A stretch of DNA of 64,000 nt from sequence record PP438435.1; one strand, 5' to 3'. Under the pieces are notes generated by a model. That model did not search any database. It was not told the DNA's origin and saw only the letters and a program-made list of their open reading frames with translations. The number at the start of each line of letters is the position of its first letter. The stretch's first letter is position 1. The position numbers and the translations under genes are program-made. Below are positions 89 to 34,972 of the stretch, piece by piece.

Positions 89-682
89 TCAAGGCCCGCC
101 GTTCGGCGCGGCGGGCCTTGAGGCTACTCGCTGCTCCAGCCCCCCAGCCGCAATCCGCTGCGCGATCCCCACGCCCCACAATTGGTCTCGCAACGCCTCG
201 ATGATCACTGAAAGCACATCTGAGCTCGCGAGGTCTTTGCCACTTTGGCGGACAATGTCGTCATAGGCGAACCTGCCCACCTTGATGACAACCCCGTCAC
301 TCTCGATGACCGCGGCTGGGCACTCGGCGGCCTCCGCGAAGGTGTCCGAGCTTCGCCATTCGTATCCTCCCTTCACCACGAACAACACATCGAAGGCAAC
401 GCCCTCCCGGGTGGACGAGCCGCGGATCTCGATCCGCTCCACTTTGGGCAGTCGCCTTTCTCGAAGCGATGCTGTCACCGCCATAAAGCTCCCAGCGGCC
501 GCGCGCACCTCCGAGAACCCGTTGTCGCTGATCGCCGAGGCGATCCGTCCCTTCTGCTTCGCGAAGTCAGCAGAACCTGCATCCACGAGAAGATAGCCGG
601 GCACAGGGCCCATGGTGTTGTGTCTCGTAAATCTCCCAAGCACCAGCAGTTGTGCGGGCGCGTCCGAATCTGCAATGGTCAT
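89..682 (-). CDS. Hypothetical protein
   Basis: Start trimmed to MTIADS (AAGGA RBS); a 12-bp GC hairpin (90-120) overlaps the 3' end. Confidence 0.7.
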   Translation of the reverse strand: MTIADSDAPAQLLVLGRFTRHNTMGPVPGYLLVDAGSADFAKQKGRIASAISDNGFSEVRAAAGSFMAVTASLRERRLPKVERIEIRGSSTREGVAFDVLFVVKGGYEWRSSDTFAEAAECPAAVIESDGVVIKVGRFAYDDIVRQSGKDLASSDVLSVIIEALRDQLWGVGIAQRIAAGGLEQRVASRPAAPNGGP

Positions 683-698
683 GGCGGTTTCCTTTGGT

Positions 699-1334
699 CT
701 ACGGGCTAGCCACCCAGCTGGGTCGAAACAGGGTGGACGCATTTTCTGTGTGACGCGATTCATCAAGCAATTCACGGACGCGATCCAGCTCGGACGCCGA
801 GTGCGGCGTGCCGCCGGCGTTGATCGCCAGGTAGTACCCCAGCAGGTCCTCCCGCCAGGCGAACGTGTGGACCTGGATCTTGATCATCCATGTGTTCACA
901 CGCCGCAGGTCGTATCGCGTCCCCGCGAACACCTCCGGCGGCTGTCCGAAGAGCTGCAGCTCGCCGGCAAGTGCGCGCTCGATCGCCGTCAGGCGCTGCA
1001 GACCGTCGACGAGCTCGATGCGCCGCGGGAGATCTCCGCCCGGCTCGTCCACTTCCCAGTGGGGGATGTTGATCTGGAGCCGCTGCAGATCTCGTGTGAC
1101 CGTGCCGCGGAGCATGCCCTCGACAAAGGCGACCTGCTGCCCTTCTGTCCACACGCGACCGCGCTGGTAGTCCGGCTCTCGCACGAAGCCGCCCCAGTCG
1201 TTCCCGAACTTCTCGATCCAGCCGCCGAGATGCTTGAGGTCGATGTCGAAGGACGCCTTCGACTGCGGAAGCGGCCGCACGATGGCTTCTGCGCGCGCTG
1301 CGCGCTCAGCGAAAGTGTTCGTGGCATCGGGCAT
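699..1334 (-). CDS. Stand-alone DUF262 (ParB/GmrS-like) domain protein
   Basis: PDYQRGRVW and LVDGLQRLTAI motifs; GGGAGG RBS before MPDAT. Confidence 0.8.
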   Translation of the reverse strand: MPDATNTFAERAARAEAIVRPLPQSKASFDIDLKHLGGWIEKFGNDWGGFVREPDYQRGRVWTEGQQVAFVEGMLRGTVTRDLQRLQINIPHWEVDEPGGDLPRRIELVDGLQRLTAIERALAGELQLFGQPPEVFAGTRYDLRRVNTWMIKIQVHTFAWREDLLGYYLAINAGGTPHSASELDRVRELLDESRHTENASTLFRPSWVASP

Positions 1335-1336
1335 CG

Positions 1337-1762
1337 TCAACCTCCCATCGCGGCGCCGGCAGCGCGCGCCACCGGCGCGCAATCCGTGCTCCGGACGATT
1401 CGATGCGCCTGCTCAGGGGCGATGTCGATCATTGCCTGCAGGGCCTCCGCGGTTCGCAGATGGGGCGCCAGGGCCTGGCTGATCGCCACGACCACCTCAT
1501 CCTGCCCGGCGTCATAGAGCGGCAGGAGCGCTCGCCAGAACAGCCCCTCCGACTGGACGGCAAAGGGCACGTGCACGAACGCACCCGGCCAGCTGTCAAC
1601 CGCTCGCTGGCACAGCGCGGCGTCGCGCAGGCTCACGGGCACGTACAGCAATCCACCGCCGTCGACGCCGACAGCGTCCCAACAGCGGGCGTACGTGCGG
1701 TCGGGCTCACGCAGTCCTTGCAAAGCTGCGGCGCCAAACGCTGGCGCGCGGTCGCTGTTCAC
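1337..1762 (-). CDS. Hypothetical protein, possible DUF4116-like helical repeat
   Basis: Coupled ORF; ALCQRAVDSWPGAFVHVP resembles DUF4116 repeats. Confidence 0.55.
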   Translation of the reverse strand: MNSDRAPAFGAAALQGLREPDRTYARCWDAVGVDGGGLLYVPVSLRDAALCQRAVDSWPGAFVHVPFAVQSEGLFWRALLPLYDAGQDEVVVAISQALAPHLRTAEALQAMIDIAPEQAHRIVRSTDCAPVARAAGAAMGG

Positions 1763-2424
1763 GGCCCGCCCATGCCCGGAAGCGGCTTCGCGGGCTCATT
1801 CGCATAGGTGGGCATGTCCGGGAGCACTGGCCCTTCTGCATCGAAGCGCACACTGCGCAGCCCGAACGAGAGCGCTTTGCGAAGCACCGCCTGGGCGCCC
1901 TCCGACAGGCCGCCCAACAGCGCGTCGTGATCGGCATCTTCGTGGAAAAGCGCGTCGCTGAGCTCGACGAGCGCGCCGTGCTCGCAGGTCGCACTTACGA
2001 TCAACTCCTTGCAGGGGCTGGAGCCGCGCACGAACTCCCCCAGCTCGCGACGCGTGATGTGCGCCGTCGACGCGAGCACATAGCCCTGCACGACGAACCC
2101 ATCGCGGCACGCGATCTCGGCGCCGCGAAGCCCATCGAACGTCGCCGGCGTTGGATTCATCTCGAAGCCTTCGGAAATTGAACGGCTCGGCCAGCCATCG
2201 TCATCGAGCTCATCCACTGTAACGACCCGCTCGCTGGACTCGTCAGCGCCATCCCACTCAGGCTCAAAGACGTAACCACCGGCACCCACTGCCCGGTCCG
2301 CGAACACCTGCTCCGCGAACTCCCGCAGCTCGGCTTCCGACTCACCCACCCCGTCCGGGATCTCGACTTTGCAGTACGCCGGGACGTTGATGGCCAATCG
2401 CATCACGCGTGTGTTGTCGCTCAT
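1759..2424 (-). CDS. Hypothetical protein with C-terminal DUF5983-like domain
   Basis: STAHIT ... VLRKALSFGLRSVRFDAEGP pattern; AAGGAG RBS. Confidence 0.6.
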   Translation of the reverse strand: MSDNTRVMRLAINVPAYCKVEIPDGVGESEAELREFAEQVFADRAVGAGGYVFEPEWDGADESSERVVTVDELDDDGWPSRSISEGFEMNPTPATFDGLRGAEIACRDGFVVQGYVLASTAHITRRELGEFVRGSSPCKELIVSATCEHGALVELSDALFHEDADHDALLGGLSEGAQAVLRKALSFGLRSVRFDAEGPVLPDMPTYANEPAKPLPGMGGP

Positions 2425-2466
2425 CTCGCACTCCTTTGCGCCAGTCGCATGGTTCTATTCTCGATC

Positions 2467-3045
2467 TCAAGGCCCCGTCATTGCGGAGGCGCGCTGCAGG
2501 AGACCGGCCGCGCTTTCCACAGCTGCCACCAGGCGCTCGAGCTCAATCAGTTGCTCGATCTGCTCGATCGCTTGAGGTAGTTCAATTCCGCTCGACTCGA
2601 GCCACGCATCCGCCTCGTCCCCAACCAGCACGCCGTCACCGCCGGGAGGCCGCACGAGCACATCCTCGAGACCGTCATCCGCGCGCCAAGCGACAGCGTT
2701 CACGGTCGCATCGGCGATGGGGGCCGCTAGAACGATGCTGTCGCGCTTGACGGTGCAGACCGTGGGCGATTCCGGCTCCGCGCGCCTGAGGCGCGCCACT
2801 GTCGCGCCCTCGACCTCATCGGGAGTGAGCCAGACCACAATGCCGGGGCACGCTATTTCAAGACTCCGAACATGCTCAGGCATGGACGCGAGATGCCGCC
2901 TGGCGGCATCCAGCTGCGCCCACCCTTCGGGATCGAGATGCAGCGCAACGATGATGGGGTCATCTTCGGAAAGCGGGCGATCGTTCGTCGCTGCGCGGAG
3001 GATGCACAGCACGTGCACCCCGTCATCTTCGCCGCCGGCGCTCAT
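2467..3045 (-). CDS. Hypothetical protein
   Basis: ATGA-coupled ORF with protein-like composition. Confidence 0.65.
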   Translation of the reverse strand: MSAGGEDDGVHVLCILRAATNDRPLSEDDPIIVALHLDPEGWAQLDAARRHLASMPEHVRSLEIACPGIVVWLTPDEVEGATVARLRRAEPESPTVCTVKRDSIVLAAPIADATVNAVAWRADDGLEDVLVRPPGGDGVLVGDEADAWLESSGIELPQAIEQIEQLIELERLVAAVESAAGLLQRASAMTGP

Positions 3046-4382: not shown

Positions 4383-5132
4383 CTACATGGATGGACTTGG
4401 GGCGACGTCACGCTGATTCGGGGCCTCGTCCTCTCCGTAGGCCCATGGGTCGCGGACGAACCCTTTCTGAGTTCGCGCAGCGCTTGCAGCGATCGCTGCA
4501 TCCATGCCCACGGCATCGGCGTGGTTGACCGCATGCCCATCGATCCGCAGCTCCCCGGCGCCCGTCACCTCGACAGTCACAGGCTCGTCCGTGTGGCGAC
4601 CGTCTGCCGACGGCCTCACCACGCCGGCGAGCGCCCCATCCGCAGTTGCGTGCAGGCCCTTCAGCATTCGTCCGCCCGCACGCTCCAGCGCGCCGTACAG
4701 CGCTTCCACGGCGGCGCGGCGACCCGTCTGAAAGTCCTCGGCTACGGCAGCCACCAACGTCTCGGCAGCGAAGTGATTCACGAAGAGCCAGTTGCTCTCC
4801 GGGCCCGGCCCGATCGCCAGCGGCACTGTGCCCTGACGCGTTTCGACCCGTCCGAGATCCGCGGCGAACCCGACACCAAAGGTCGGCGCTGGATCCGGGT
4901 AAGTGCGCGGTAGCACGAGAGCAAGGCTGAACTCGCCCGTGCTCTGGTAGCTGCAGACCGGCAGGTCGCGGCCATGCAGGGCAGCCAACGCCACCAGCCC
5001 ATCGCTCAGCGCCGACTCGCGCCGCTGCGCCGAATCCCAGCCCCCCTTGCCGCGCTCTGCCTGAAGGCGCTCGTAGGCGTTGAGCAAAGCTGCGCGCGCC
5101 TCAGCCACGAACGGAAGCTGCTTTTGGTTCAC
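4383..5132 (-). CDS. Hypothetical protein
   Basis: AGGAG RBS, GTG start; ends SPSM. Confidence 0.7.
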   Translation of the reverse strand: MNQKQLPFVAEARAALLNAYERLQAERGKGGWDSAQRRESALSDGLVALAALHGRDLPVCSYQSTGEFSLALVLPRTYPDPAPTFGVGFAADLGRVETRQGTVPLAIGPGPESNWLFVNHFAAETLVAAVAEDFQTGRRAAVEALYGALERAGGRMLKGLHATADGALAGVVRPSADGRHTDEPVTVEVTGAGELRIDGHAVNHADAVGMDAAIAASAARTQKGFVRDPWAYGEDEAPNQRDVAPSPSM

Positions 5133-6161: not shown

Positions 6162-6833
6162 TCAGACCATCGCCGGCGGACGCGGCGCCCGCAGAGGAGG
6201 GGCCACAGCGACCTCGGAGCCCTCAGGCTGCCACACAAGCCGCGTGTCGTCTCCGGACCAGATCTTGCCGTTGAACTTGACGAAACCGATCAGCCGCCGC
6301 TTCGGCTCGTTGTGCTTCCAGACCTCGCCGCCGGCGAAGTCACCGGGCGCGAGCCCGTTACGCTCGATGTAGTCGCGGACCAGGCGGGACGCAACCTCCA
6401 GGTGATGCGCGCCTTCCCACTTCAAGCGGCCGCCCTCCAGGCAATCGCGCCGCGTGTGCGCCAGCGCTACGCGGTACGGCATGAGAGCGTTTCGACGGTC
6501 CAACGCCTGGCGCAAAGCCTCCTGGACCACCTCGAAGGTAACGCAGAGCTGCGCGCAGTTGAGGAAGGGCACGCCATTGATGGCGACGACGCCACCGGTG
6601 CTGGCACCGATCGAGACGCTGTCACCGGTATAGGGCAACGGCACGTTGCACCTGCGCCACTCTTGCGCAACCGACTGCTGCCACGGCGTGCGCTTCAGTC
6701 CTGCATCGGCGAGCACGGCATCCGCGAGCATCTCGGCTTCATCGCGTGTCCTTGCTGCCGCGCCGAAGAGCACGAAGCCGGGAGCGCCCCAGCGATTGAC
6801 ATCGAAACGTGGATCTTCGAGCACCCCTTCCAT
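6162..6833 (-). CDS. Hypothetical protein
   Basis: Start trimmed to MEGVLE (GGAAGGGAG RBS); C-terminal ASRLVRDYIERNGL...VKFNGKIW module of a kind seen in mobile-element proteins. Confidence 0.65.
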   Translation of the reverse strand: MEGVLEDPRFDVNRWGAPGFVLFGAAARTRDEAEMLADAVLADAGLKRTPWQQSVAQEWRRCNVPLPYTGDSVSIGASTGGVVAINGVPFLNCAQLCVTFEVVQEALRQALDRRNALMPYRVALAHTRRDCLEGGRLKWEGAHHLEVASRLVRDYIERNGLAPGDFAGGEVWKHNEPKRRLIGFVKFNGKIWSGDDTRLVWQPEGSEVAVAPPLRAPRPPAMV

Positions 6834-6865: not shown

Positions 6866-8131
6866 CTACATGCTTGGCGATTGCAACGCGACGACGTCTC
6901 CCGCGCCGCACCCGTATGCGGCCCAGCAGGCTTCCTTGGCGGCGGGATGCAGCGGCTTTCCGTTCTCGAACAGCGCATCTGCCAACGCATCTGCGCTGAG
7001 CCCAGACTTCAGCACCTGCTCCGTCGACAGCTGCGCGCCCAGACGCAGGAGCGGCCCCAAGATCCCTGGCTTCGCTGCCAGTGCGTTGTCGACTTCGCCC
7101 AGGTCTACACCGGCGGCGAGTCCCTGCTCGATCGCCGCCCGCAGCCCATCCGGCGAGACCTTTGCGGCGACGCGGCTCAGGAGTTCGATCGCCTCGCTCT
7201 CTGCCAGCGTTCGCCAGAGCAGCGGCGCGGCATTTGCGTCGGAGAACATCGACCGGCAATTCAGGCAGATGTTGGTCAACAGCGCCTCGCGCTCCTCTGG
7301 AGATAATTGCCTCACAGCCATTGCTCCTTGGATCGCACTCGCCGCCAACGCGGCCACGGGCTGCACAGGTGCGCTAGTCCGATTGCTGACAGGATGCCGT
7401 CCGTCGAAAAGCTCCGGCGCCAGATAGAACACGCGCTCAAGCAATGCCTGCGACTCGTCATCCAGTCGCACCACGCCTCGGATGGCACTCAGCACGCCGA
7501 AATACTCGCCCAGCATCTCCGGGTCGAGCTGTTCCTTACCCGTGCCAGCGCATTCGCCTACGCACACGAACTCATGAATGCGTTCGACGGCTGCGGTAAG
7601 CGCCTCCAGATCCACCGTGTTCAACTGGTCCGCAGATGTCAGCCACGTCTCCAGCCAAATCGGGTCTGTGCGCGCCAAGGCCCACGCGACATCCGCGTCC
7701 AAGGCGCCGTTCGCGATCGCGGCGCGGGCTACAGGCGACGCAAGCTCCGAGTTGAAGCACCCCGACTCCTGAACCGCCGTGTACACCAGCTCCGGCGTCC
7801 AGAGGTGATGCGGCACCTTCAGGAGCTCATCGGGCGCGTCACGAAGTCGCGCGACAGTCGCCTGCCAGCGGGGATCTGCGTGATAGCCCGTCGATGGCCG
7901 CAGCGCCGCCGCTGAGATGACGCCCCCCTCACCGCCATACGTAATTCTGTACCGGTCGTTCTTTACATGACCTACGATCTCGCCGATCGTCGGCGACTCA
8001 TGGGGCCCGAGCAGAACGCTCTCGCCAGGGGCATAGACAGCAACAAGAGCATTCCCATGCGCCTGGGCCTTGACCCAGCCACGCTCGCAGCTGTAGGCCT
8101 GGCCGAATCTGTGAGCACGCATCATCCTCAT
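6866..8131 (-). CDS. Hypothetical helical protein
   Basis: 421 aa ORF, ATGA coupling; ends SPSM. Confidence 0.7.
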   Translation of the reverse strand: MRMMRAHRFGQAYSCERGWVKAQAHGNALVAVYAPGESVLLGPHESPTIGEIVGHVKNDRYRITYGGEGGVISAAALRPSTGYHADPRWQATVARLRDAPDELLKVPHHLWTPELVYTAVQESGCFNSELASPVARAAIANGALDADVAWALARTDPIWLETWLTSADQLNTVDLEALTAAVERIHEFVCVGECAGTGKEQLDPEMLGEYFGVLSAIRGVVRLDDESQALLERVFYLAPELFDGRHPVSNRTSAPVQPVAALAASAIQGAMAVRQLSPEEREALLTNICLNCRSMFSDANAAPLLWRTLAESEAIELLSRVAAKVSPDGLRAAIEQGLAAGVDLGEVDNALAAKPGILGPLLRLGAQLSTEQVLKSGLSADALADALFENGKPLHPAAKEACWAAYGCGAGDVVALQSPSM

Positions 8132-8434: not shown

Positions 8435-9313
8435 TCAAAGTGCCGGCGCAGACGCCGGTGCCGTCTCGCCGGTAAGGACCGCGCGCAGCAACGGCGGGAG
8501 ACGTTCGATCTGTGCCCACCGGGCAGAGGAGACGCTGGCGCCGAACTCGACGCGCACGTCCGGGTGCTCGAGCTCCAGCGCACGCTCGCGCACAGCGTCG
8601 GGCAAGTGTTCGATGCCCATCCAAAGCAACTGCGTCGGGCAATACTCCGCCGCTTCCGCCAGGTACGTCGCAGGGAGACGCGGGATGATCGACGGCTGCA
8701 GGGCCACGCGGTAGCGACTAGACGGGCCGCCAAAGCGACTCCCTTGCCGACTCTCCCCATTCAGGAAGGCGATGAGAACCTGGTCCGTCACCACGTGGGG
8801 CGCTCGCGCGAAGACCGCCTCCAAGGTCTGAGGCGGCACACCAGGCATGTTCCATGCCCGCCTCGCCAAGTCATCGACAGCCGCACCACCGAGCGCACAA
8901 CAGCACGCATCCGACAGCAAAGCATCACCTGGCCTGCGACCCGCCACCCATGCAAGAGTCTCGCGTGACAGCTGGGCAGAGAGCTGGATACCCAAGGCCG
9001 GGTGCGCTGCCGCGATCTTCTCGGCCTGTGGCCGTGTCACGCGCCCCGCTGCGTATCGCACCACCGCCTCGGGAGCAATGTCGACGAGCTCATCGAACAC
9101 GCTCGGCGAGATCGAGCCCGCCGCCTTATTGAGCGCGTGCGCCGGCGCACGCAGAGCGCACCAGTCGAGACGGGCCTGCGACAGTCGGCAGGCAGCGAAG
9201 TCGAGCGCATTCTCAGGGTCGAGACGCGCGCACGCATCGACGGCCGCGTCGTCTTTCAGGGACGCCCAGAACACCGGGTCGCGGGCATTCTCAGCCTCAT
9301 AGTAGCGACTCAT
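8435..9313 (-). CDS. Tandem ~23-aa helical repeat protein
   Basis: Repeats such as ACARLDPENALDFAACRL / WCALRAPAHALNKAAGSI / LVDIAPEAVVRYAAGRV; ATGA coupling. Confidence 0.65.
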   Translation of the reverse strand: MSRYYEAENARDPVFWASLKDDAAVDACARLDPENALDFAACRLSQARLDWCALRAPAHALNKAAGSISPSVFDELVDIAPEAVVRYAAGRVTRPQAEKIAAAHPALGIQLSAQLSRETLAWVAGRRPGDALLSDACCCALGGAAVDDLARRAWNMPGVPPQTLEAVFARAPHVVTDQVLIAFLNGESRQGSRFGGPSSRYRVALQPSIIPRLPATYLAEAAEYCPTQLLWMGIEHLPDAVRERALELEHPDVRVEFGASVSSARWAQIERLPPLLRAVLTGETAPASAPAL

Positions 9314-9714
9314 GGCGTCAGCGCCTGTGATCGGTTCGCGCTCAGCGCCGGGAAGGGCGAGGTGAGGCTGTAGCCCGTACGGCGCTCGACGCACTCGACG
9401 AGCATGTCGCTGTAGATGTCATCCACGCTGTCGACGAGACGCAGACCGGCCTCAGGCCCCTCGAATACGTCCACATCGTAGGTGTCCGAGGGCGCGAGCA
9501 GGACGCGGAAGGCGGTGACGCGGCCTCCGCACTCTGTCATGTCGATACCGCTCACGAGCAGACCGGCGCCGCGCTCAGGATCATGTTGCACGCAGAAGCG
9601 CGTGGCCGGACCCAGCATCAAGCGGAGGCAGCGCTCACCCCCAAGCTGCTCCAGGATCGTGCTCGCGACCCGGTGTGCCCACGGGGGCGAGAGGGACGGC
9701 TGCGATGATGACAT
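9310..9714 (-). CDS. Conserved phage/plasmid hypothetical protein
   Basis: TILEQLGG ... LAPSDTYDV ... IYSDML ... TGY pattern. Confidence 0.7.
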   Translation of the reverse strand: MSSSQPSLSPPWAHRVASTILEQLGGERCLRLMLGPATRFCVQHDPERGAGLLVSGIDMTECGGRVTAFRVLLAPSDTYDVDVFEGPEAGLRLVDSVDDIYSDMLVECVERRTGYSLTSPFPALSANRSQALTP

Positions 9715-25185: not shown

Positions 25186-26502
25186 TCACGCGCCGGGTGC
25201 AGCGCTGCGCGCCGCTTCCGCCTCACGCAGAGCGCGGAGTGCTCGCTCCGCCGCAGCCAGCGCCATGGCGGGTTCCAGGGACTCCGCGAGGCTCTGAGGA
25301 TCGACCCCGTTCTCGCGAGCAATCTGCGGAAACTCGAGCACCGCTGACAGCACACGCTGCGCGATCTCTGACGCACGCGACTGCTCGATGCCGAAGCTCG
25401 ATGCAGAGCGCACGATCCACGAGGCCGTGAGCGGCGGTTCGTGATCGCCGAGCATCGCGAGCTTGTGGGGTGACGGGCGACCACTGAGATCGAGGTCGGT
25501 CACCATGATGTCGATGTTGGGCGAGAGGGACCAATCGCCGCGCTCATCCTGGATAAACACCCACTGGCCCAGGTGGTCATCGGTGTTGTTGACAGCGCGG
25601 TTCAGAACCATGCGCCCGAAGATCTCCTCGACATCGCGCTCGGGATCCGCCGAATACTGGCGCGCAAACCCCACGAGGTCGGAGTAATCGTTCTTGGGGT
25701 TCTCGATCGCGGCAGCTGCGCTGACGGTGTGCAGGATCGTCGCGCGATCGTCGACATCGAAGCGGCGGCTCAGCAGGATCGAACTGTTGTCCGCGTTGCT
25801 GATCAGCGTCGTGTCCGCCGTGTTCAGTCCTGCGCGTTTGGACACCTCGCAGAGCGACGCTTCGACGCGCGCTTCAGGATAGGTGCCGAGGATGTCGCGC
25901 GGGAACTTCGCGACATAGCACTCGCCCATGTCATCCACATAGGCCGCCTTCGGTTGCGCTCCCCCGTGGGTGGCCAGCGCCCAGCGGTACTTGTCGCGAC
26001 CGAGCGCGAACGGGCAGACCTTCTCGCTGGCGTAGCGACTGATGAACTCGTCGACGCGTCGCTGCAGTGTGCGAAGCGCCTCGAAGGTCTCGACATAGTG
26101 ATCGATGTCAATGTCAGAAGCGTTGAAGCGCAAGCCACCCGACTGCCAGTCGCCCAGCATGAAGAGCTTCTCCGCCGGCGTGGAACGCGCATAGATCGCG
26201 CTATGCGACGCCAGCACGAGCTCACCCCACTGCCCCGGTAGTGCCTGGGCGAATACGGGATGGAGGTCGTCGGCCTGCGGGCCGCGCAGGTTCGGGTTTC
26301 CCTGGGGAAGGTGGACGAACTCGCGCTGCCCCATGCGGTAGTCCAGCGAGGGCGCGAGCGGCGGGCCGTCATAGTCTTCGTGGTAGACGAACACACCCGG
26401 CTTCTGCGGCCGCGGCAGCAGGTACAGGCCGACGGCAACCCAGCGGTTGTCGCCGCCCGGAATCTGACGAAAGACTTCGATGGTGCGTGGGGCGGTGCTC
26501 AT
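25186..26502 (-). CDS. hipA: HipA-family Ser/Thr kinase toxin
   Basis: LPGQWG, GGAQPKA, YVAKFP, LLSRRFD, NTDDH, LSPNID; GGAGG RBS. Confidence 0.88.
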   Translation of the reverse strand: MSTAPRTIEVFRQIPGGDNRWVAVGLYLLPRPQKPGVFVYHEDYDGPPLAPSLDYRMGQREFVHLPQGNPNLRGPQADDLHPVFAQALPGQWGELVLASHSAIYARSTPAEKLFMLGDWQSGGLRFNASDIDIDHYVETFEALRTLQRRVDEFISRYASEKVCPFALGRDKYRWALATHGGAQPKAAYVDDMGECYVAKFPRDILGTYPEARVEASLCEVSKRAGLNTADTTLISNADNSSILLSRRFDVDDRATILHTVSAAAAIENPKNDYSDLVGFARQYSADPERDVEEIFGRMVLNRAVNNTDDHLGQWVFIQDERGDWSLSPNIDIMVTDLDLSGRPSPHKLAMLGDHEPPLTASWIVRSASSFGIEQSRASEIAQRVLSAVLEFPQIARENGVDPQSLAESLEPAMALAAAERALRALREAEAARSAAPGA

Positions 26503-26538
26503 GGATCCCTCCGTGGACGATAAGCAGCGGGTGCGTGA

Positions 26539-26892
26539 TCAGGACGAGGGCGGCGCGCCCGTGCGCTCTTGAACAGCTTGGCGGGACAGGGTGCGGGCGG
26601 TCTCTATGACCAGCACCTCCTGATCCGCCATCAGCTTCAGCGCGTTCGGCAGCACTCCCAAGGCCTGCCAGATCTTGAGGAGCACTTCGAGGTTGACACT
26701 GTTGCCAGCCTCAAGGCGCGCAACAGTGTCGCGATGCACGCCAGCCGCTTCCGCCAACTCCTGCTGGGTCAGCCCCCGCCCCTGCTCCCGAAACTCACGG
26801 ACGTAGCGCCCCAGGTGCTCCAGAGCGGCATTGATCTGGAGCTCAACGGAACGAGCGGCCGTGGTCTTCGTGAGCGGGGGTATGACGGACAT
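26539..26892 (-). CDS. hipB: XRE-family HTH antitoxin (HipB-like)
   Basis: GLTQQELAEAAGVHRDTVARLEAG; directly upstream of hipA. Confidence 0.85.
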   Translation of the reverse strand: MSVIPPLTKTTAARSVELQINAALEHLGRYVREFREQGRGLTQQELAEAAGVHRDTVARLEAGNSVNLEVLLKIWQALGVLPNALKLMADQEVLVIETARTLSRQAVQERTGAPPSS

Positions 26893-27114: not shown

Positions 27115-27678
27115 ATGGAAACCATACGCTCGATACCGGCCGCTGCTCCGACCCGTACCCGCCCTGCGTCGCACCTCGATCGCTCTCTGCTGGCGCTGGT
27201 TTTCGCGCCGCGGATGACGCAGACGGAGGCTGCTGAGTATGCGCAGGGCCGAAAGTCCGCTGTCGCCAGCGCTGTCGCTGCATGGACGCTGGCGGCGGGC
27301 GCCCTGTTCTTGGTGCTGATCGCGGCAGAGGCCTACGCGAGCACCGTCCATGCAAAGGTGATTGCGATTGGCTCGTGGCGCAGCGCCGAACACGCCGATG
27401 CCATCACGCTCATGTGCGTCGCTTTCGGCGTGACGCTCTTCCTGCTGGCCTCGATGCTTCGCCCTTCGCTGATTCTCGGACGGGCATCGTCGGTCCTCGC
27501 CGCGATTCAGCCGCAGGCCGCTCAGCGCGCCACTTCGCAGGTGCGTGCCTTTGCCGACCTCTCGCCGATCACCCGCCTCGTTGCTTTCGGCCTCGTAGCC
27601 GCAGTGATCGCGCTGCTCTACAACGTCTTGGTTCTGGGGCCCGCTCACGCGATTCTCGCTCTCGCCACTGGGCTCTGA
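27115..27678 (+). CDS. Multi-pass membrane protein
   Basis: 3-4 hydrophobic segments; convergent with dotA. Confidence 0.7.
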   Translation: METIRSIPAAAPTRTRPASHLDRSLLALVFAPRMTQTEAAEYAQGRKSAVASAVAAWTLAAGALFLVLIAAEAYASTVHAKVIAIGSWRSAEHADAITLMCVAFGVTLFLLASMLRPSLILGRASSVLAAIQPQAAQRATSQVRAFADLSPITRLVAFGLVAAVIALLYNVLVLGPAHAILALATGL

Positions 27679-27708
27679 TCCTCCACGCAGCACAAGCAGC
27701 AACACACC

Positions 27709-27736
27709 AGAAGGGACGGGGAAACCCGTCCCTTCT
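27709..27736. terminator. Hairpin terminator between convergent genes
   Basis: AGAAGGGACGGG-GAAA-CCCGTCCCTTCT, perfect 12-bp stem. Confidence 0.8.
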
Positions 27737-27757
27737 CTTTGGGTCGGGCGCGGCGAC

Positions 27758-29992
27758 TTACCGGCCACCGCTCGCCGAAACGCCACCCGACGAGCCCACG
27801 CTTCCCACCGCGCCAGTGGCCTTCCTCGCGGCCCCGCCCACCTGCCCGACACCGCGCTGTGTGGCAGCCCACCAGGCAATTGCCATCGTGCGCGCCTGCT
27901 CGCCCATGTTGCTCTCGCCGAAGGCCTCCATGCGCGCGCCGATGAAGCGCAGAACGCTGTCAGGCACCAGATGGATCAGACTGAAGCTCCAACGCGCCAG
28001 CACCGCGAGAATGGCGCCCGTCAGGAAGATCCACACGACCATGCCAACGATGCCTGGTGCGGTCACGCCCGGGCCTGCCGACGCGCCCGAAAAAATGTGG
28101 AACGCCTTCAGGACAAAGCCGCCCATGAAGTCGAGCACCAGCATGCCGGCCACGAAGCCCGCGATCATCAGCACGGGGCGAGCGACGAGGCTCACCAGCA
28201 GCATGTAGCCGTCCATGGCGCGCTGGCCCGCAAACCCCTCGCCATCGGGTGCGGCGTGCGCCGCGGCCCAGAGAGGCGCCGCCACAACTGCCTGGACCAA
28301 CATCATCAACCACCCTGCCACACCCGCAATCCAGATCAGCAGCGGCAGCGCTGGCACGATGTACGCCATCGTGGCGCCGACAACAAAAATGGGAACGAGC
28401 GCGGAGAACCCCGCCGACAGCAGTGCAAAGCCGCCGACACCCGACAACGCAGACGCGACTACGGACGCAGCTACGACGACCGCCAGCAACCCTGCACTCA
28501 CGACGAGCAGAATGTGACCCCACCGCACAACCCGCGGAATGAGCCCACTGCCGTCATCGAGCGCCGCCTGCATGATCCAGTCGTAGCCCTCACGTGCCGT
28601 TGCCGCCATACGCCGGCCGAGAGCATCAAAAGCGTCCGTCATCGAAGGGCCTGCCATCAGCGCTCCGGTCATTGAGGGCGCTGCCCACATGGCGATCGCC
28701 GAAGTGTCGCCTTCGACGTCCGGGTGCACGTAGGTCGCGGCCGCATCCTCATTGCGCGGAATGATCTGCCTGGCAGCGACGATGTGCGGCACGACGTCCT
28801 GAGCAACAGCAGGAGGCAACTGCCCCGGTGCTGGCTCATCGAACAGCGGCTCCGCATTGATGCTTTCGTTCATCCGCGCATCAAAAGCGGCGAAGGTCAT
28901 ATAGTACGCGCCTGCGACAAGCCAGCCGTTGGCTTCTGCCGTCGCCATCTGTGCCTGTCGAAGCAGGACCTCAGCCCCATTCTTCGCCTGGTTCGCGAGC
29001 AGCGTGCTTCGGCGCATACGCACCAGGTACTCGCCCTCCAAGCTGACCAGTTCACTCCGCACCTGTTCTGCTGACAAGCCGCCCTCCGTACGGGCGGCGA
29101 CGAGATCCCTGACGCGATCCTGTAGATACAGGATCGCTCGACCCTGCTCGCGCAGCGTGAGCTCAGCCGCCTCCCGCTGGAGGACCGACGATGGCTCGAT
29201 GCCCAGGGGCATCTCACGCTGAAGCGTCACGGCGCCACAGAGCGGAACCGCGGATGCGAGATCGCCTTCTCCCGAATACTTCAGAACCCACTTCGCAGTC
29301 CGGGTGCCCTCCCCGCTCCACGGGAACGCACCCGAGCTATCTTCGACGGTCTCGGTGAACCCGGCCGGCGTGGACACTCCAAAGCTCGAAGCAGCCGCGC
29401 CTGACCCGTCGCCCTCAGCACTCTTGCGAACGGCCGCTGCACACGCCTCCAGCTCGTACAGCTTGCTCGCAACGCTAGCGCTGAAGCGTGGCGGCACGGC
29501 AGGCGCGAGCTCCATGCGCTCACTGAGGTAGTTGTTGCTTCGGCTCCACGCCTGATCAGCGAAGCCGCTGCCCTGCATGCCCACCCACAGCACCATGGCC
29601 TGGATGACCGAGTAGCCGCCCAGACTGAGCGGCGTCAGCATGCCCGCCGCAATCGCCACACGCAGCGGCACCCACACCATGGAGTAACGGCCACCCACCT
29701 TGCCATGCTCGCCGGTCTGCATCAGCGCGCTGATGAAGGTCATCAGCACCAGCAGCACGGCAGCAAGGAGCGCTGCCATGTTCACGACGCCGGCAATCGG
29801 CGCCAGGATCGAATCCGAGTTGCGCGCGGTCTCGATGGCGCGGGCCAAGGTCTCCGCATCGACACCGAAGATCCCCTGCACGGCATCACCGCCGCGAACA
29901 CCCTCCATCTGCTGCTGGGCGAGTGCGGCGCCGCTTGCCAGCAGTGCCGAGAGCGACAGCGCGCTGATTCCCCACTTGCGAGTCCAATTCAT
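27758..29992 (-). CDS. dotA: DotA/TraY type IVB secretion membrane protein
   Basis: WVPLRVAIAAGMLTP, YSVIQAMVLWVGMQG, GW..AGAYY, AYIVPALP..IW, APLWAAAH..PDG..RPVLM. Confidence 0.92.
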   Translation of the reverse strand: MNWTRKWGISALSLSALLASGAALAQQQMEGVRGGDAVQGIFGVDAETLARAIETARNSDSILAPIAGVVNMAALLAAVLLVLMTFISALMQTGEHGKVGGRYSMVWVPLRVAIAAGMLTPLSLGGYSVIQAMVLWVGMQGSGFADQAWSRSNNYLSERMELAPAVPPRFSASVASKLYELEACAAAVRKSAEGDGSGAAASSFGVSTPAGFTETVEDSSGAFPWSGEGTRTAKWVLKYSGEGDLASAVPLCGAVTLQREMPLGIEPSSVLQREAAELTLREQGRAILYLQDRVRDLVAARTEGGLSAEQVRSELVSLEGEYLVRMRRSTLLANQAKNGAEVLLRQAQMATAEANGWLVAGAYYMTFAAFDARMNESINAEPLFDEPAPGQLPPAVAQDVVPHIVAARQIIPRNEDAAATYVHPDVEGDTSAIAMWAAPSMTGALMAGPSMTDAFDALGRRMAATAREGYDWIMQAALDDGSGLIPRVVRWGHILLVVSAGLLAVVVAASVVASALSGVGGFALLSAGFSALVPIFVVGATMAYIVPALPLLIWIAGVAGWLMMLVQAVVAAPLWAAAHAAPDGEGFAGQRAMDGYMLLVSLVARPVLMIAGFVAGMLVLDFMGGFVLKAFHIFSGASAGPGVTAPGIVGMVVWIFLTGAILAVLARWSFSLIHLVPDSVLRFIGARMEAFGESNMGEQARTMAIAWWAATQRGVGQVGGAARKATGAVGSVGSSGGVSASGGR

Positions 29993-30004
29993 CGTGAGTC
30001 TCCT

Positions 30005-30445
30005 CTAGCCCAGCATCAGCACACCGCGCGACGGCGGGTTACGTTTCGCAAACTCCAGCAGCGCATCCGTGACGCACAGAGCTGCGATCTCAAAAGCAAC
30101 GCCCTTCGGGGCGGCGACAACGCGCTGGCGCATCAGCCCTCCCATGTCGGGCACATTCTCGAAGGTGAAAGGACGGCTCCCGCCGCGGTCGAGCCACGCC
30201 TCCGCATAGACCATCCGCGCCTGCTGCACCAGGATGGGCAACAGTTGGTTCGGAATCAGTGCGAAATCAATCGGCATGTCGAAATCACCGTCTTCGTCGA
30301 GCACGCCATTCGGCGGCGCAATATGTTTCACACCCATGTCGATCAAGAGCCCGCGCAGAAGCGCGATCAACTGATCCACCAGGGCGCCTTCGCGAGGCTC
30401 ACCACGGCTGGGGGCCGCGGGGGGCGTACGAGGTGCGCTCGTCAT
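30005..30445 (-). CDS. IcmS-like small protein
   Basis: LLPILVQQA, GGLMRQRVV and LCVTDALLEF..NPPSR align with recalled IcmS blocks; directly upstream of dotA. Confidence 0.5.
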   Translation of the reverse strand: MTSAPRTPPAAPSRGEPREGALVDQLIALLRGLLIDMGVKHIAPPNGVLDEDGDFDMPIDFALIPNQLLPILVQQARMVYAEAWLDRGGSRPFTFENVPDMGGLMRQRVVAAPKGVAFEIAALCVTDALLEFAKRNPPSRGVLMLG

Positions 30446-31616
30446 CTTCAAACTCCAGTTCGTCGCTGTCCTCGTGCGGCACAGAGACCGCCTCCGGAGA
30501 CAGCCAGGTCCAGTCAGCGTCCGGTTCCAAAACCGTCGCGGGCAGCTCTTCCACGGCCAGCCCGCCCGCATCGTTCGGCGCCGCGCCAGATTCGTCAGAG
30601 GACGCGTGCGCGACCGCCGCCAGGCCCGCCCCATCATCCGTCTCCACCGGCTCTTGGAGCGCATCACGCCGCTCCGCGGGAGCCACCAGCGGCTCGCGCT
30701 CACGCGCTACCGCATCCTCAATCACTTCGGGAACCACGCCTTCAGCGCGACGACGCTCCCAGTAGGCGCGATCCGACGCTGACAGGCCGCAGTCGCTGTC
30801 CGCCTTGGACACCTCAGCCGCAGGTGCCATCTTGGAATCCCCATCGCCCTCGCCGCGCTTGAGCGCCGCACGAAGCCGTGGGGCAAGCTCTGGCATGACC
30901 GCGAAACAGCGCTCGATCAGATCGCCAGGCGGTCCTGCCTCTCCGGCTTCGCCGGCATCGTCCTCGATCACCGCCTCGACCGCGTGCGCGATGCCGGGAA
31001 GCGTCAACGACGGCGGCACATCCGCAAGTGCAGCCTCCCCCAGGGTGGTGAGGCCGCCCGCATCCACAAAGCCGCGCTCAACAGCGCGGATCGCATGATC
31101 GGCGATCGACGACGGACGCCCCAAAGACTCGCGAGCGAGTGCCTCGAAAGCCACCTCTTCAGCATCGAAGTCGAAGAGCTCGGCCTGAACGACACGATCG
31201 CATCCGTCAGCGCCTGAGCGTGCCTCGACGGGGAACTCAGGCCCTGGGCGCCACCACGGCAGATCCCGCGCCCACGCGGGCAGCGCACTGGTGTCAGGCC
31301 GTTCGATCTGCACGGGCACCGCAGCGCGCACATTGGATCGCGCCACGCGATCCAGGAAACGCAGCTCCTCAGACAGCAGATGCTGGGGCACACCCGCGAA
31401 CCCCGGCAGCTCACCCCGCAACACATGCACTGCCTCGTGCGGCTTGCGCGGGCCGATTACGACCGGCTCTGCCACGCTGCCAAGCGCGCCGCGATACAAC
31501 CCCGCGACGCGCGCCACGCCTGCGGCGCCCAGAATCCGGGATGACGTCCGCGGATAGCTGATGTCACCGGCCTCATAGCGGTGCTGGATCGTGGCGGCGG
31601 CGGCAGCTACGCGCAC
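30399..31616 (-). CDS. C-terminal half of a split type IA topoisomerase
   Basis: YEAGDISYPRT catalytic motif, PHEAVH, GRPSS..AVERGFV..LTTLG; GGAGG before GTG. Confidence 0.7.
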   Translation of the reverse strand: MRVAAAAATIQHRYEAGDISYPRTSSRILGAAGVARVAGLYRGALGSVAEPVVIGPRKPHEAVHVLRGELPGFAGVPQHLLSEELRFLDRVARSNVRAAVPVQIERPDTSALPAWARDLPWWRPGPEFPVEARSGADGCDRVVQAELFDFDAEEVAFEALARESLGRPSSIADHAIRAVERGFVDAGGLTTLGEAALADVPPSLTLPGIAHAVEAVIEDDAGEAGEAGPPGDLIERCFAVMPELAPRLRAALKRGEGDGDSKMAPAAEVSKADSDCGLSASDRAYWERRRAEGVVPEVIEDAVAREREPLVAPAERRDALQEPVETDDGAGLAAVAHASSDESGAAPNDAGGLAVEELPATVLEPDADWTWLSPEAVSVPHEDSDELEFEDDERTSYAPRGPQPW

Positions 31617-32395
31617 AGGGCCTCCGCACGTGTTTCAACGCCATCTCCGATGCGCAGCGGAACGGGCCGCCCACACAGCGCCCGCACGAGATCGTTGTAG
31701 TCCCAAGCGGCCTGCGGCCGCAGCCACTCACAGCGGACCGCGGCCAAACCGTGCGCGTTTGCGAGTTCGGACACCCGCTGCTTCCACAGCTCGCGCTCCG
31801 CGGCGGTGTACGCCACTTCCGTGCGCCACGCGGGGCCACCATCCACACTCGCGACCACAAGACGCACCACGCCGACGATCGGCGCCCGCCGGCGAAGACT
31901 CGCCAGCAGCGGCGTCAGAATCCGCCCCGCCGGCGCACCGCGACGGCTGAACGTGTGCCCGATGAGGCGATCCAGGATTCGACGCGCGTCGCCTTGACGA
32001 GCAAGACGCGGGTCCATGGCTTCAGGGGCATCGAGCGCCGCGCGAACGCCCTCGATCGTGATGGATCGAATACGAATGCGCACTACGCTGACGGCCAGGC
32101 CTTGGACAACGCCAGCCACATCCCGGGCGATCACATCTCCTTCGGCGTCGTCGTCCGTCGCCAGCAGCACAGCACGGTCTTTGGCTGCCTCGCGCAGTGC
32201 GCGCTCCGTGCGCGCATCCGCTCGCCGCGACGGCTCCTCGTAACGCGGCGTAATCGCAAGCGGCCACAAGCTCGCCGGCGAACGAAAGAAGTGTCCGCGC
32301 GTGGCCACCACACGCCAACCGTAACCCAGACGACGAAGGATGGCCGTGAGCGTGCTCACCTTGCCAGGCGCCTCGATCACGACCACGCCCTGCAT
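31607..32395 (-). CDS. N-terminal (Toprim) half of a split type IA topoisomerase
   Basis: VIEAPGK, ATRGH, LATDDDAEGDVIA, ARRILDRLIG. Confidence 0.8.
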   Translation of the reverse strand: MQGVVVIEAPGKVSTLTAILRRLGYGWRVVATRGHFFRSPASLWPLAITPRYEEPSRRADARTERALREAAKDRAVLLATDDDAEGDVIARDVAGVVQGLAVSVVRIRIRSITIEGVRAALDAPEAMDPRLARQGDARRILDRLIGHTFSRRGAPAGRILTPLLASLRRRAPIVGVVRLVVASVDGGPAWRTEVAYTAAERELWKQRVSELANAHGLAAVRCEWLRPQAAWDYNDLVRALCGRPVPLRIGDGVETRAEALCA

Positions 32396-32396
32396 G

Positions 32397-32987
32397 TCAG
32401 GCGCCCAGCTGAGGCGCCGCAGCGGCGCGGTGCTTGGGAGGATCCAGGTTATCGATCGCGGCGTCGAGCTTGGCCAACACGTCCGTCAGCCCGGGCACAT
32501 CCCTCGGCAGTACGCCGAGCTGCTTCTTGGCGCGCTCCAGTTCGGCCGCGCCCTCGAGCGCCGCCTCAGCGGCGCGTCCCTGGGCCACGCCGTGCTCGTA
32601 GTTGGCGCCCACTGCAGTCAGCATGCGCTCCGCATGCTGACTTACCGCCTCGCCCAGCGCCTTGCGCTGATCCGGCAGTGCCCACATCTCGCCCATCGAC
32701 TTCGCTGCCGCCACACGAACAGGCTCGGGTAGCAGCTCGTTCTTGCGAACCGCCTCAAGCTCGGCCACGGTGCCGGCAGCGTACGGCTGAAGCAGGCCCT
32801 TCAGGTGATCGAAGGCCTGCCGCAGAAGGAACATCGGATTGCCGTCTTCCTCAGCAATCTCCCGCAGCATTCGCTCGCGGCTGCTCTGCGAGACCAAGCC
32901 TCGCAGAGCGACTGCGCGCTGCTCATCCCTGGATCGGCCGAGGCTACGTGCCAACGGCATCTCCGGCGTCAGGTTCATTCCATTCAT
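32397..32987 (-). CDS. Hypothetical helical protein
   Basis: GGAG RBS; in the tra operon; ends APQLGA. Confidence 0.7.
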   Translation of the reverse strand: MNGMNLTPEMPLARSLGRSRDEQRAVALRGLVSQSSRERMLREIAEEDGNPMFLLRQAFDHLKGLLQPYAAGTVAELEAVRKNELLPEPVRVAAAKSMGEMWALPDQRKALGEAVSQHAERMLTAVGANYEHGVAQGRAAEAALEGAAELERAKKQLGVLPRDVPGLTDVLAKLDAAIDNLDPPKHRAAAAPQLGA

Positions 32988-33009
32988 ACGTCCACTCCCT
33001 TCCTTGGGA

Positions 33010-34098
33010 TCAGTCCTGCCGTATCACGCGCGCATGTTCGGCCTGAAGCTGCCGACTGCGCTCATTGAGGCCCTGGTTGGCGATCATTGCCAACAGCAGC
33101 GTCTGTTCCTGCTCGATCTGAAGGCGTTCGGTATCCACCCAGAGCTGGGCCGACATCGTCAGCTGCATCTCGCGCAGCAGACCCGCCTCCGTCTTGGCCG
33201 CCAGCTCGATCGGGCGCTCACTCGACTCGATGCCGTCGATTGCCCACTGTTTGACGGTTGCCAGATAGCTACGTTCGCCCTCGCCTTGCGCGACACGCAT
33301 GGCCGCATGGCGCGCCACGATCTCAGCAGGCAAGGCCGCCGACGCGCGGTAGAGCTCCGCCTTCGCCTCGTACTCGGTGAGCGCCGCCGTGCTGCCACCG
33401 CTGGACGGGGCGCGAGGAACGGGCTCGGGCGTCAGAGCCAGCGAGATCGCGTCGCGGACGCGCTCGGCCTCTTCCACCGGGATTGTGTCTCGCATCAAGT
33501 AGTCCGGCTTCAGTGCGTCCTGCGTGCCGTTGTACTTGGCCAGCGTGGCGCGGAGATTGGCCATCGATCCGGCATAGCTGCCATAGCCCGCAGCATTGGT
33601 CGCGATCGCACGCTGTGATTCCTGGAAGCTGCGATCGCGCACGCGGCTCTGAGCCTGCAGCCGACGCGCATCTGACGTCCGGCGGCACGCGGACGGGGCG
33701 TTCGCTCCCACGGTCACCGTCTGCCCGTTGACCTGCATGGTCATCAAGGTGCCGAAGGTGCGGTTGTAGATAGCCTCTTCCGCAGCCGCGGTCTGCTGGG
33801 CGATGGTCTCGACCATCACGCCGGCATGCTGCTGCAGCGCCTGCTGGGTGCCCAGGGTATTTGCCGCCACCTGCTCGACCACGGCGCCATCGCCCTTCTC
33901 GACGACGATCGACTGCATGACTTGCTCTGCAAGCCACTGCTGCATGATCGGCCAGAATCCCGTGAACCAAGCAATCCACGCAGCAGCATCGCCGCCCGTC
34001 GCTCGCGCCACCGGCGCGGCGGCAACGCCTACACCGAGCACGACTCCCAGAAGGATGCTGGACGCTTTGCCTGCAAAGGTGTTCCGAATCGACATCAC
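33010..34098 (-). CDS. TraW/IcmX-like exported conjugation protein
   Basis: Signal peptide; C-terminal LLREMQLTMSAQLW..E..EQTLLLA pattern; tra context. Confidence 0.55.
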   Translation of the reverse strand: MMSIRNTFAGKASSILLGVVLGVGVAAAPVARATGGDAAAWIAWFTGFWPIMQQWLAEQVMQSIVVEKGDGAVVEQVAANTLGTQQALQQHAGVMVETIAQQTAAAEEAIYNRTFGTLMTMQVNGQTVTVGANAPSACRRTSDARRLQAQSRVRDRSFQESQRAIATNAAGYGSYAGSMANLRATLAKYNGTQDALKPDYLMRDTIPVEEAERVRDAISLALTPEPVPRAPSSGGSTAALTEYEAKAELYRASAALPAEIVARHAAMRVAQGEGERSYLATVKQWAIDGIESSERPIELAAKTEAGLLREMQLTMSAQLWVDTERLQIEQEQTLLLAMIANQGLNERSRQLQAEHARVIRQD

Positions 34099-34532
34099 AC
34101 GCCCTCCGTACTCGGCCGCGCACCCTGCCGCGACTCAAGCGCAAATCGATCAGAGGCCTCGCGCGCCAGCTGGTGGACGTCCTCGGGCGTGTGCGCATCC
34201 GTGATCGCGTCGAGCACGACTTGACAGAGCGCATCGCCGCTGATCGACCCGATGATGCGGCGGATCGCGCTGCCAATGCCGGCACCGATGCGCCCGAATC
34301 CGCCCATGTTGATGGTTCGCGCCAGGCAGCCCAGGTTGTACTTGCGCAGCGCCGGCGTGATCGCGCGACGCACATTCTGCGTACTGAGGGCCCCCATCCG
34401 ATCAGCGATGGAGTTGCCCGCCTGACTGACGACGCAGTCCTCCTGGGAGGCCTGAGCCAGGGCACCGGTGCTGAAGACGAGCGCGGCACAGGCGAGTGCA
34501 ATGGCGAGAAACTGTTTGATCCGATCGAACAT
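34095..34532 (-). CDS. Small exported protein with three mature-region Cys
   Basis: Signal peptide ending ALA-Q; coupled to the traW-like gene. Confidence 0.65.
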   Translation of the reverse strand: MFDRIKQFLAIALACAALVFSTGALAQASQEDCVVSQAGNSIADRMGALSTQNVRRAITPALRKYNLGCLARTINMGGFGRIGAGIGSAIRRIIGSISGDALCQVVLDAITDAHTPEDVHQLAREASDRFALESRQGARPSTEGV

Positions 34533-34543
34533 GGCTTCCTTCC

Positions 34544-34972
34544 TTACATCGACGGGGACACACGGACGACTTCACGCGTCCGGTAGATGATGCGCGTCAG
34601 CGCGAACACGGCACGCAGAAACCCCGCCCGCCCTGCGACCAGCGCGGCCAGAACGGAGCCCGGCCGAACCGCAGCCTCGACGTCCGCCAACCAGTTCTCG
34701 TCGTAGCGCTCGACGGCGCCAAAGAGGCGCAGCGACTCCGGTGCAGGAAGCAGAGCGAACACGCGCGCCGTCAGCCTCGGGTTGCGACGCAAACGCTGCA
34801 TGATCTCCCCGTCGTGCCGCTCGACAGAGGCCAGCAGACGCGCGTACAGACGCTGACCATTCACTGACAGCGGCGGGATCCAGCCCTCGGCTTCCTGGAG
34901 CGCGTTCGCGACCAGGCCCACCTCGATGGAGCCGTCAAAGATCGATCTCTGGAGAGCCAGGGCGTGCCGCAT
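34544..34972 (-). CDS. IcmW-like protein
   Basis: LQEAEGW, ESLRLFGAVER and FLRAVFALTRII resemble recalled IcmW blocks; divergent from dotL. Confidence 0.55.
   Translation of the reverse strand: MRHALALQRSIFDGSIEVGLVANALQEAEGWIPPLSVNGQRLYARLLASVERHDGEIMQRLRRNPRLTARVFALLPAPESLRLFGAVERYDENWLADVEAAVRPGSVLAALVAGRAGFLRAVFALTRIIYRTREVVRVSPSM

Follow-up and report, generated by a model that had tools for sequence, protein, structure and literature searches.

Proteins translocated by Dot/Icm type IVB secretion systems (T4BSSs) carry C-terminal signals that are rich in small and polar residues, have a hydrophobic residue near the end and often include a glutamate-rich block (PMC3814349, PMC10025392); the hydrophobic residue lies at position -3 or -4 (PMC3814349). 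DotM binds acidic C-terminal signal peptides, replacing the terminal leucine of a consensus signal abolishes transport, and the authors of that work proposed that, where a system lacks acidic tails, different interfaces may have co-evolved on DotM (PMC5802825). Conjugative type IV secretion systems (T4SSs) deliver plasmid proteins into recipients (PMC8406263, PMC12624023), and the polyvalent proteins, a class for which no C-terminal signal was described, are predicted to travel with the DNA into the new host (PMC5512222). How conjugative systems choose their protein substrates is an open question, and a 2025 review reports that some plasmids secrete accessory proteins and offers no rule for which (PMC12624023). 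Here we describe a short C-terminal tail shared by unrelated proteins of sequence record PP438435.1, deposited as 'Dolichospermum phage Dfl-JY45' (linear, 208,985 bp, 226 coding sequences, nearly all hypothetical), which encodes an I-type (type IVB, Dot/Icm-like) conjugation system. The window analysed is 64 kb long and corresponds by megablast to positions 144986-208985, the last 64 kb of the record; coordinates are those of the window unless the record is named.

A common C-terminal tail

The window has a GC (guanine plus cytosine) content of 65%, and gene calling by codon usage gives 70 genes, 43 of them left of 35 kb and 27 to the right. A preliminary description had proposed a common C-terminal P-x-M/L tail on at least 15 of the encoded proteins. 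All of the C-termini that it quoted are present in our gene calls; for the plus-strand genes at 16273, 16872 and 19553 the positions it gave are gene starts, and the tails end at 16875, 17351 and 19933 respectively. In a typical carrier a short flexible linker rich in Ala, Pro, Ser and Arg leads into Pro and a small residue, and then into a Met or Leu placed among the last 1-6 residues. We define the strict core as P-[SGA]-M inside the last 8 residues, and nine of the genes, at 1759, 4083, 4383, 6162, 6866, 10343, 16273, 24164 and 34544, have it. The tail-bearing genes, and two with similar ends, are as follows.

1759-2424, minus strand: DUF5983-family protein; strict, ends PLPGMGGP; the Pfam domain stops 13 residues before the stop codon
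4083-4352, minus strand: small protein; strict, ends PHPSM, stop codon TAG; weak coding score, but the gene is also in the public record
4383-5132, minus strand: 249-residue protein; strict, ends PSPSM, stop codon TAG
6162-6833, minus strand: 223-residue protein; strict, ends RPPAMV
6866-8131, minus strand: 421-residue protein; strict, ends QSPSM, stop codon TAG
10343-11017, minus strand: 224-residue protein; strict, ends RQSPGMGMG
16273-16875, plus strand: 200-residue protein; strict, ends RASPGMQP
24164-24601, minus strand: 145-residue protein; strict, ends RPSMGM, stop codon TAG
34544-34972, minus strand: 142-residue backbone protein adjoining the coupling-protein gene; strict, ends VSPSM; C-terminal transmembrane-like helix
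3042-4019, minus strand: 325-residue protein; loose, ends RGPAV
8435-9394, minus strand: 319-residue protein; loose, ends SAPAL
13343-14395, minus strand: DUF7007 / ankyrin-like protein; loose, ends PAPGL
16872-17351, plus strand: 159-residue protein; loose, ends AGPTL
19553-19933, plus strand: 126-residue protein; loose, ends ATPGF
32397-32987, minus strand: 196-residue protein of the conserved DotA-to-DotL block; drifted, ends APQLGA
1337-1762, minus strand: 141-residue protein; Met-containing AMGG end without Pro
2467-3045, minus strand: 192-residue protein; Met-containing AMTGP end

The end of the gene at 1337 is ambiguous because its last codons double as the ribosome-binding site of the next gene. 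Two further ends listed at the outset as related, NGGP (gene at 89) and RAGP on the relaxase, have no hydrophobic residue and do not belong to the motif.

The strict core is found in 9 of the 43 genes left of 35 kb and in none of the 27 genes on the right, the transfer and pilus half. From four internal occurrences at 10,447 positions of the same proteins, only ~0.1 terminal matches are expected. Spurious open reading frames (ORFs) provide a GC-matched control, and their ends have the strict core in 0 of 304 cases in the same region and 1 of 254 in the other half; it is also absent from 88 real genes of unrelated GC-rich loci (58-68% GC). These counts bear out the expectation of enrichment over a GC-matched background. 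Overall, P-[SGA]-M lies ~45-fold above expectation.

The motif extends beyond the window. Across the whole record, for which the counts cover 215 genes, P-x-M ends 14 proteins where 0.30 are expected (P = 3e-19) and P-x-L/F/I/V ends 17 where 4.1 are expected (P = 2e-6, about four-fold), for a total of 31 tail carriers, a larger set than the 15 first proposed. Taken singly, the six P-x-L/F/V ends in the window are weak; the class as a whole is enriched, and with 17 found for 4.1 expected the majority of the loose ends, though not all, must be real. Those at 8435 and 32397 are backed by orthologs with Met at that place. Met is enriched at positions -1, -2 and -3, and Met or Leu is found from -1 to -5. 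The motif exists far beyond chance, is under selection at the protein level and is of a kind kept in orthologs, as described below.

Nucleotide-level evidence

Among 22 tail-encoding ends, relatives included, all four Pro codons are used and the middle residue is specified by ten different codons; the serine of the PSM copies is encoded by TCG, TCC and AGC, as had been pointed out in the preliminary description. The DNA of these 22 examples has nothing in common besides ATG and the stop codon, and the start codon that follows a tail gene lies at a distance of -4 to +63 nt. The varied codons for Pro and the middle residue, together with the variable spacing, argue for selection on the peptide.

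One nucleotide-level feature is unexplained by the reading that we favour. Ends finishing exactly in Met avoid TGA (3 of 14, compared with 203 of 299; p = 7e-4, the cases not all being independent), and TAG or TAA is far commoner there than in other genes (4083, 4383, 6866, 24164 and relatives). Of the five PSM ends in the window, four have the sequence ATG TAG C.

The three consecutive minus-strand genes between 3042 and 5132 share one frame, the gaps between them consisting of TAG plus 6 and TAG plus 13 sense codons. Such a shared frame is compatible with chance (1/9). Readthrough of TAG was considered and set aside, as an in-frame continuation is present in 2 of 4 cases, within chance.

Conservation in related elements

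Relatives of the tail genes were examined in a syntenic 21-kb stretch at 40-85% identity (L001), a 2.3-kb contig (L014) and five loci found via the coupling protein (L022/L023 and L027 at 73%, L024 at 60%, L025 at 46% and L026 at 45%). The Pro-small-Met/Leu end is kept while its flanks change in orthologs from L001, L014, L022/L023, L025 and L027, in agreement with the conservation that had been anticipated, and it is lost from some orthologs. The 67% ortholog of 6866 retains SPSM although the preceding 8 residues differ, and a 47% ortholog ends SLSP. In L001 the orthologs of 6162, 10343, 3042 and 16872 end PAMG, GLGMS, GGMTP and GFSP. The Leu-ending 8435 has orthologs ending APAM in L001 and APAP in L014, and the orthologs of the drifted 32397 end TPGM in L022 and MPSLGG in L027. 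For 34544 the orthologs end PPAM, TPSL, QPSM and SMQMRG, and the Pro-small-Met/Leu form persists down to 30% identity. This is how a short linear motif behaves when it sits in a disordered tail.

BLASTP detects no pairwise similarity among the 31 carriers. Most members of the DUF5983 family end at the domain, while the window protein and its 68% relative add 13 residues that end in the motif. With unrelated carriers and such an extension, the tail is best described as an appended peptide, independently acquired or maintained.

Two other features of the comparison with L001 (JGI 3300053491 contig, 230 kb) deserve mention. Its orthologs of 3042, 5101, 6866, 8435 and 17378 are split in a frameshift-like manner, into 2, 2, 2, 3 and 3 ORFs respectively, possibly through assembly error or decay. 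Within the accessory region, conservation is highest for a tail-less HerA/FtsK-like ATPase (14871-16226), 85% identical to its L001 counterpart compared with 40-70% for its neighbours.

Proteins that carry the tail

The carriers are mainly soluble, non-backbone proteins. Many have no known function, and the others include DNA methylases, giant polyvalent proteins and a nucleotidyltransferase toxin. A 579-residue DNA methylase and an AbiEii-type nucleotidyltransferase, encoded immediately to the left of the window, both have the tail. A transmembrane-like segment is predicted in 1 of the 31 carriers compared with 55 of 184 other proteins (p = 7e-4), and the transfer, pilus and partition blocks contribute 1 tail in 48 genes compared with 30 in 167 elsewhere (p = 0.004). 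The structural genes named in the preliminary description (TopB, ParM, the DotB-like and DotA-like proteins and PilN/O/Q) are indeed tail-free.

Two of the giant proteins outside the window have recognisable polyvalent-protein domains, LPD1 (E = 2e-19) in one and four copies of ART-PolyVal (E = 8e-80) in the other. The LPD1 giant ends VRSPSL, a loose tail; the four-fold ART-PolyVal giant ends SAGMGMSA, without Pro, and is excluded from the 31. These giants lie together in record positions 50977-78123 (L020), which encode the LPD1 protein of 1832 residues, a helicase-related protein of 2214, the ART-PolyVal protein of 2387 and a protein of unknown type of 1185. All four have Met or Leu among their last few residues, and the Pro-small-hydrophobic form is seen only in the LPD1 protein.

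Transfer machinery and nature of the element

The right half of the window and the DotA-to-DotL block encode much of an I-type transfer system, the main components of which are listed here.

35116-37680, plus strand: coupling protein, DotL/IcmO homolog and candidate reader of the tail (Pfam TraG-D_C; PDB 6sz9_A)
27758-29992, minus strand: DotA/TraY-like protein of 744 residues, no tail (BLASTP to the annotated DotA/TraY of plasmid pMAQU01, E = 4e-14)
41373-54358, minus strand: type IVb pilus operon (pilin-like proteins, two ATPases, PilO, secretin, TcpQ-like protein), no tails
56182-57333, minus strand: DotB/TraJ-like ATPase, no tail (Pfam T2SSE; 36% identity to the pMAQU01 homolog)
57330-58178, minus strand: DotC/TraI-like lipoprotein, no tail (Pfam T4SS_TraI, E = 3.5e-47)
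58180-58620, minus strand: DotD/TraH-like lipoprotein, no tail (BLASTP to pMAQU01 DotD/TraH, E = 4e-12)
59401-60669, minus strand: MobA/MobL (MOBQ) relaxase, no P-x-M/L tail (Pfam, E = 8e-62)

Residues 7-601 of the coupling protein match the solved structure of DotL (PDB 6sz9_A, E = 3e-109), and its C-terminal 254 residues form a clade-specific, acidic extension with a net charge of -28. A DotM (IcmP) homolog is encoded outside the window (record 10603-11961; PDB 6sz9_B, E = 5e-18), and DotH/IcmK, a TrbI/DotG-like protein and a DotO-like protein of 1024 residues are found elsewhere on the record. No homologs of IcmS, IcmW or DotN were recognised in the record. Two other proteins were considered in looking for a receptor near the coupling-protein gene: a 362-residue conserved neighbour at 33010-34098 has no PDB or Pfam match, and its AlphaFold model, with a predicted local distance difference test (pLDDT) score of 51, is of too low quality for structural searching, and a 373-residue protein encoded after the transglycosylase is not DotM-like.

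The surroundings of this block have several features of their own. A HipA-like kinase and a helix-turn-helix regulator form a pair at 25186-26892, beside the DotA block, and the neighbourhood is kept in L024, L025 and L026. Inside the DotA-to-DotL block, 30399-32395 holds a second small Toprim and topoisomerase-like gene pair, the full TopB being at 11017-13164. GC-rich hairpins that resemble bidirectional terminators lie between convergent genes at 27678-27758 and ~39360-39450.

The I-type conjugation set is complete on the record and is accompanied by a relaxase, ParM, ParB and DnaB; the genes for the relaxase, ParB and ParM lie in the right half of the window. No capsid, portal, terminase or tail families were found among the ~100 of the 226 proteins that were compared with Pfam or PHROGs, PHROGs being used for ten large ORFs. 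With a conjugation set present and virion genes not found, we regard PP438435.1 as an I-type conjugative megaplasmid-like element and not as a cyanophage. The stated cyanobacterial host has a GC content far below 65%. The GenBank phage record very probably represents a conjugative megaplasmid whose host was a heterotroph in the cyanobacterial culture. The record ends are not joined by a terminal direct repeat, which would be a sign of circularity.

A megablast search with 50 kb found no close DNA relative in the plasmid library, and none of 185,579 species genomes yielded a relative in pattern-seeded protein scans based on TopB and the HerA-like ATPase. A metagenome scan with the HerA-like ATPase gave only 35-41% relatives in non-T4BSS contexts, which were used as controls. 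The element family has been seen in metagenomes only, and our literature search found no mention of PP438435 or Dfl-JY45.

Related tails on other T4BSS plasmids

Over its ATPase part, the coupling protein shows 35-40% identity to its counterparts on annotated MPF_I plasmids. One such distant plasmid, pMAQU01 of Marinobacter nauticus (NC_008738.1), has DotL, DotM (E = 5e-20) and annotated IcmW and DotA. In the last 8 residues of its proteins, an acidic (Asp/Glu-rich) block combined with Pro-small-hydrophobic occurs in 14 of 211 compared with 0.22 expected, and P-[SGA]-M alone in 5 compared with 0.47 expected; the net charge over the last 15 residues of the 14 carriers is -3.8. A homolog of the LPD1 giant is among these carriers, and the phosphonate (phn) operon and the transposases of the plasmid have no tails. 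On pSMR5 the orthologs still have the acidic block and end in a hydrophobic residue, again with drift, and a Thalassospira plasmid has a few similar ends. We found no description of the pMAQU01 acidic-block tails in the literature searched.

By their composition the pMAQU01 tails fit the acidic Dot/Icm class, and the window tails share with them only the Pro-small-hydrophobic end and homologous carriers. The tail is therefore linked to certain plasmid lineages of the DotL/DotM type, varies in flavour among them and is not universal.

Interpretation of the tail

We consider the tail to be best explained as a T4BSS translocation or recognition tag for delivery into the recipient, with a probability of roughly 0.6. 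The ~209-kb conjugative element would move by its I-type secretion system, and the tail would be a C-terminal recognition peptide read by the coupling complex of the DotL and DotM homologs. Tailed proteins would be fed through the channel into the recipient at mating, where they could act before the incoming DNA is expressed. The tests of enrichment and conservation, the presence of DotL and DotM homologs on the record and the tails of pMAQU01 lend support to this reading, which the preliminary description had put forward as export of unrelated proteins into recipient or target cells. We more tentatively raise the possibility that a compact C-terminal tag defines the exported proteome (more than 30 proteins, including methylases and polyvalent giants) of a family of T4BSS megaplasmids, its flavours, basic or neutral here and acidic in Marinobacter, having co-evolved with DotL and DotM.

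Several observations weigh against delivery. The strict, deeply conserved tail at 34544 is an exception to the general pattern, being on a membrane-anchored backbone protein and not on cargo. The local tails have no clear Glu-rich block (Glu is 8.8% compared with 6.2% at positions -30 to -9), and this places them outside the one Dot/Icm signal class with a known receptor. The Pseudomonas plasmid pPYO_TB has no significant enrichment and an IncI-gamma/K1 plasmid of Escherichia coli has 0 of 92 genes with the tail, so that the motif is not general to I-type systems. Charge comparisons of the DotM soluble domain (+2 vs +6) and of the DotL C-terminal extension (-28 vs -17) revealed no co-variation with tail flavour. 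The motif may also be host-wide, although on pMAQU01 the housekeeping cargo (phn operon and transposases) is tail-free.

Protein-level selection, conservation and unrelated soluble carriers would be equally expected of a short linear motif that acts in the donor without any export, for instance a degron or a docking peptide for a protease adaptor, chaperone or regulator, which would keep potentially harmful enzymes short-lived or silent. Such a motif accommodates the tail on the membrane protein at 34544, and several of the carriers are toxin-like, with AbiEii or ART domains. No protease or adaptor gene was recognised among the ~100 scanned proteins, however, and the motif recurs on the distant pMAQU01, where the common denominator is the T4BSS and where it is accompanied by an acidic block typical of Dot/Icm signals; we therefore regard a purely donor-side role as the main rival reading, but an unlikely one. 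A different view of the tails is that they are functionless Pro/Ala/Gly/Ser-rich extensions of a GC-rich genome, picked out by chance or post hoc. Across all genes of the record, Pro, Ser and Gly are on the whole overrepresented in the final 10 positions, Pro is the most frequent last residue (37 compared with 12 expected, partly through CCATGA and CCGTGA start/stop overlaps), and ~4 members of the loose P-x-L class are expected by chance. But Met has an AT-rich and rare codon, and neither the ~45-fold excess over expectation, the single match in 558 spurious ORF ends and 88 GC-rich real genes, nor the persistence of the motif in orthologs as its neighbours drift is accounted for in this way, so that this explanation is largely refuted and very improbable.

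The recurrent ATG TAG C and the avoidance of TGA at Met ends, together with the few genes (such as 1337) that hold the Shine-Dalgarno sequence of the next gene in their last codons, raise the question of a nucleic-acid signal at gene ends, for ribosome binding, translational coupling, RNA processing or recombination, that happens to be translated. The absence of DNA conservation past ATG and stop, the varied synonymous codons, which extend to both TCN and AGC for Ser, and the inconstant distance to the next start make this even less probable; moreover, the Met codon of the tail is in frame with the stop and is thus unable to start the downstream gene. Least probable of all, in our view, is that PP438435.1 is a true phage, as its GenBank label states, and that the tail targets proteins into the capsid for injection. 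Batteries of proteins are indeed packaged and injected by phages, some of which also encode polyvalent proteins (PMC5512222). Against this stand the lack of virion families among the scanned proteins, the complete conjugation set with its relaxase, ParM, ParB and DnaB, the GC content, and the fact that the nearest annotated architectural relatives are conjugative plasmids.

If the tail is a delivery tag, the proteins sent by plasmids into new hosts would become predictable from genomes alone, and the escort role predicted for polyvalent and anti-restriction enzymes would gain a concrete signal. The logic of Dot/Icm signals would then reach from the effectors of pathogens to ordinary plasmid biology.

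Comparison with known systems

Several other C-terminal peptides, namely the transfer-messenger RNA tag, the clamp-binding motif, the SSB tip, encapsulin cargo peptides and PDZ or TPR ligands, were considered, and the tails are unlike them. The XVIPCD of bacteria-killing type IVA effectors is a conserved domain of ~120 residues, whereas the common part here is shorter than 10. The Arg-rich signals of VirB/VirD4 (type IVA) systems resemble the local tails in being unstructured and C-terminal, and the local tails are commonly positively charged close to the end. However, the mean net charge of the local tails over the last 15 residues is only +0.4, their defining feature is Pro-small-Met/Leu and not spaced Arg, and no type IVA system genes were seen on the record.

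Delivery of accessory proteins alongside DNA has precedents in the ParA, ParB, SSB and PsiB proteins of pED208 and in the primases of RP4 and IncI plasmids (PMC8406263, PMC5512222, PMC12624023), although these are type IVA or enterobacterial IncI systems, for which a short common motif has not been described. The polyvalent proteins of Iyer et al. (2017; PMC5512222) are represented on the record by the LPD1 and ART-PolyVal giants with their loose tail variants; the tail is not limited to them, however, and most carriers are small, single-domain proteins.

In architecture the closest plasmids are pMAQU01 and pPYO_TB (MOBQ / MPF_I), which have in common with this element DotL, DotM, DotA, a type IVb pilus, ParM, TopB, RdgC, HU, DNA methylases and giant helicase-related proteins, but whose coupling proteins are at most 40% identical, and in the ATPase part only. 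The closest signals are those of the Dot/Icm effectors of Legionella and Coxiella. There the signal occupies the final 20-30 residues, among which small and polar ones abound, and the local motif lies in the last 8 residues of 31 proteins; both have a hydrophobic residue near the end, DotL and DotM are encoded on the same replicon as the local tails, and the pMAQU01 version has the acidic block too. The local core differs in being a tighter tripeptide, often at the very end, with Arg frequently 2-5 residues upstream, and its carriers belong to a conjugative element and presumably act in bacterial recipients.

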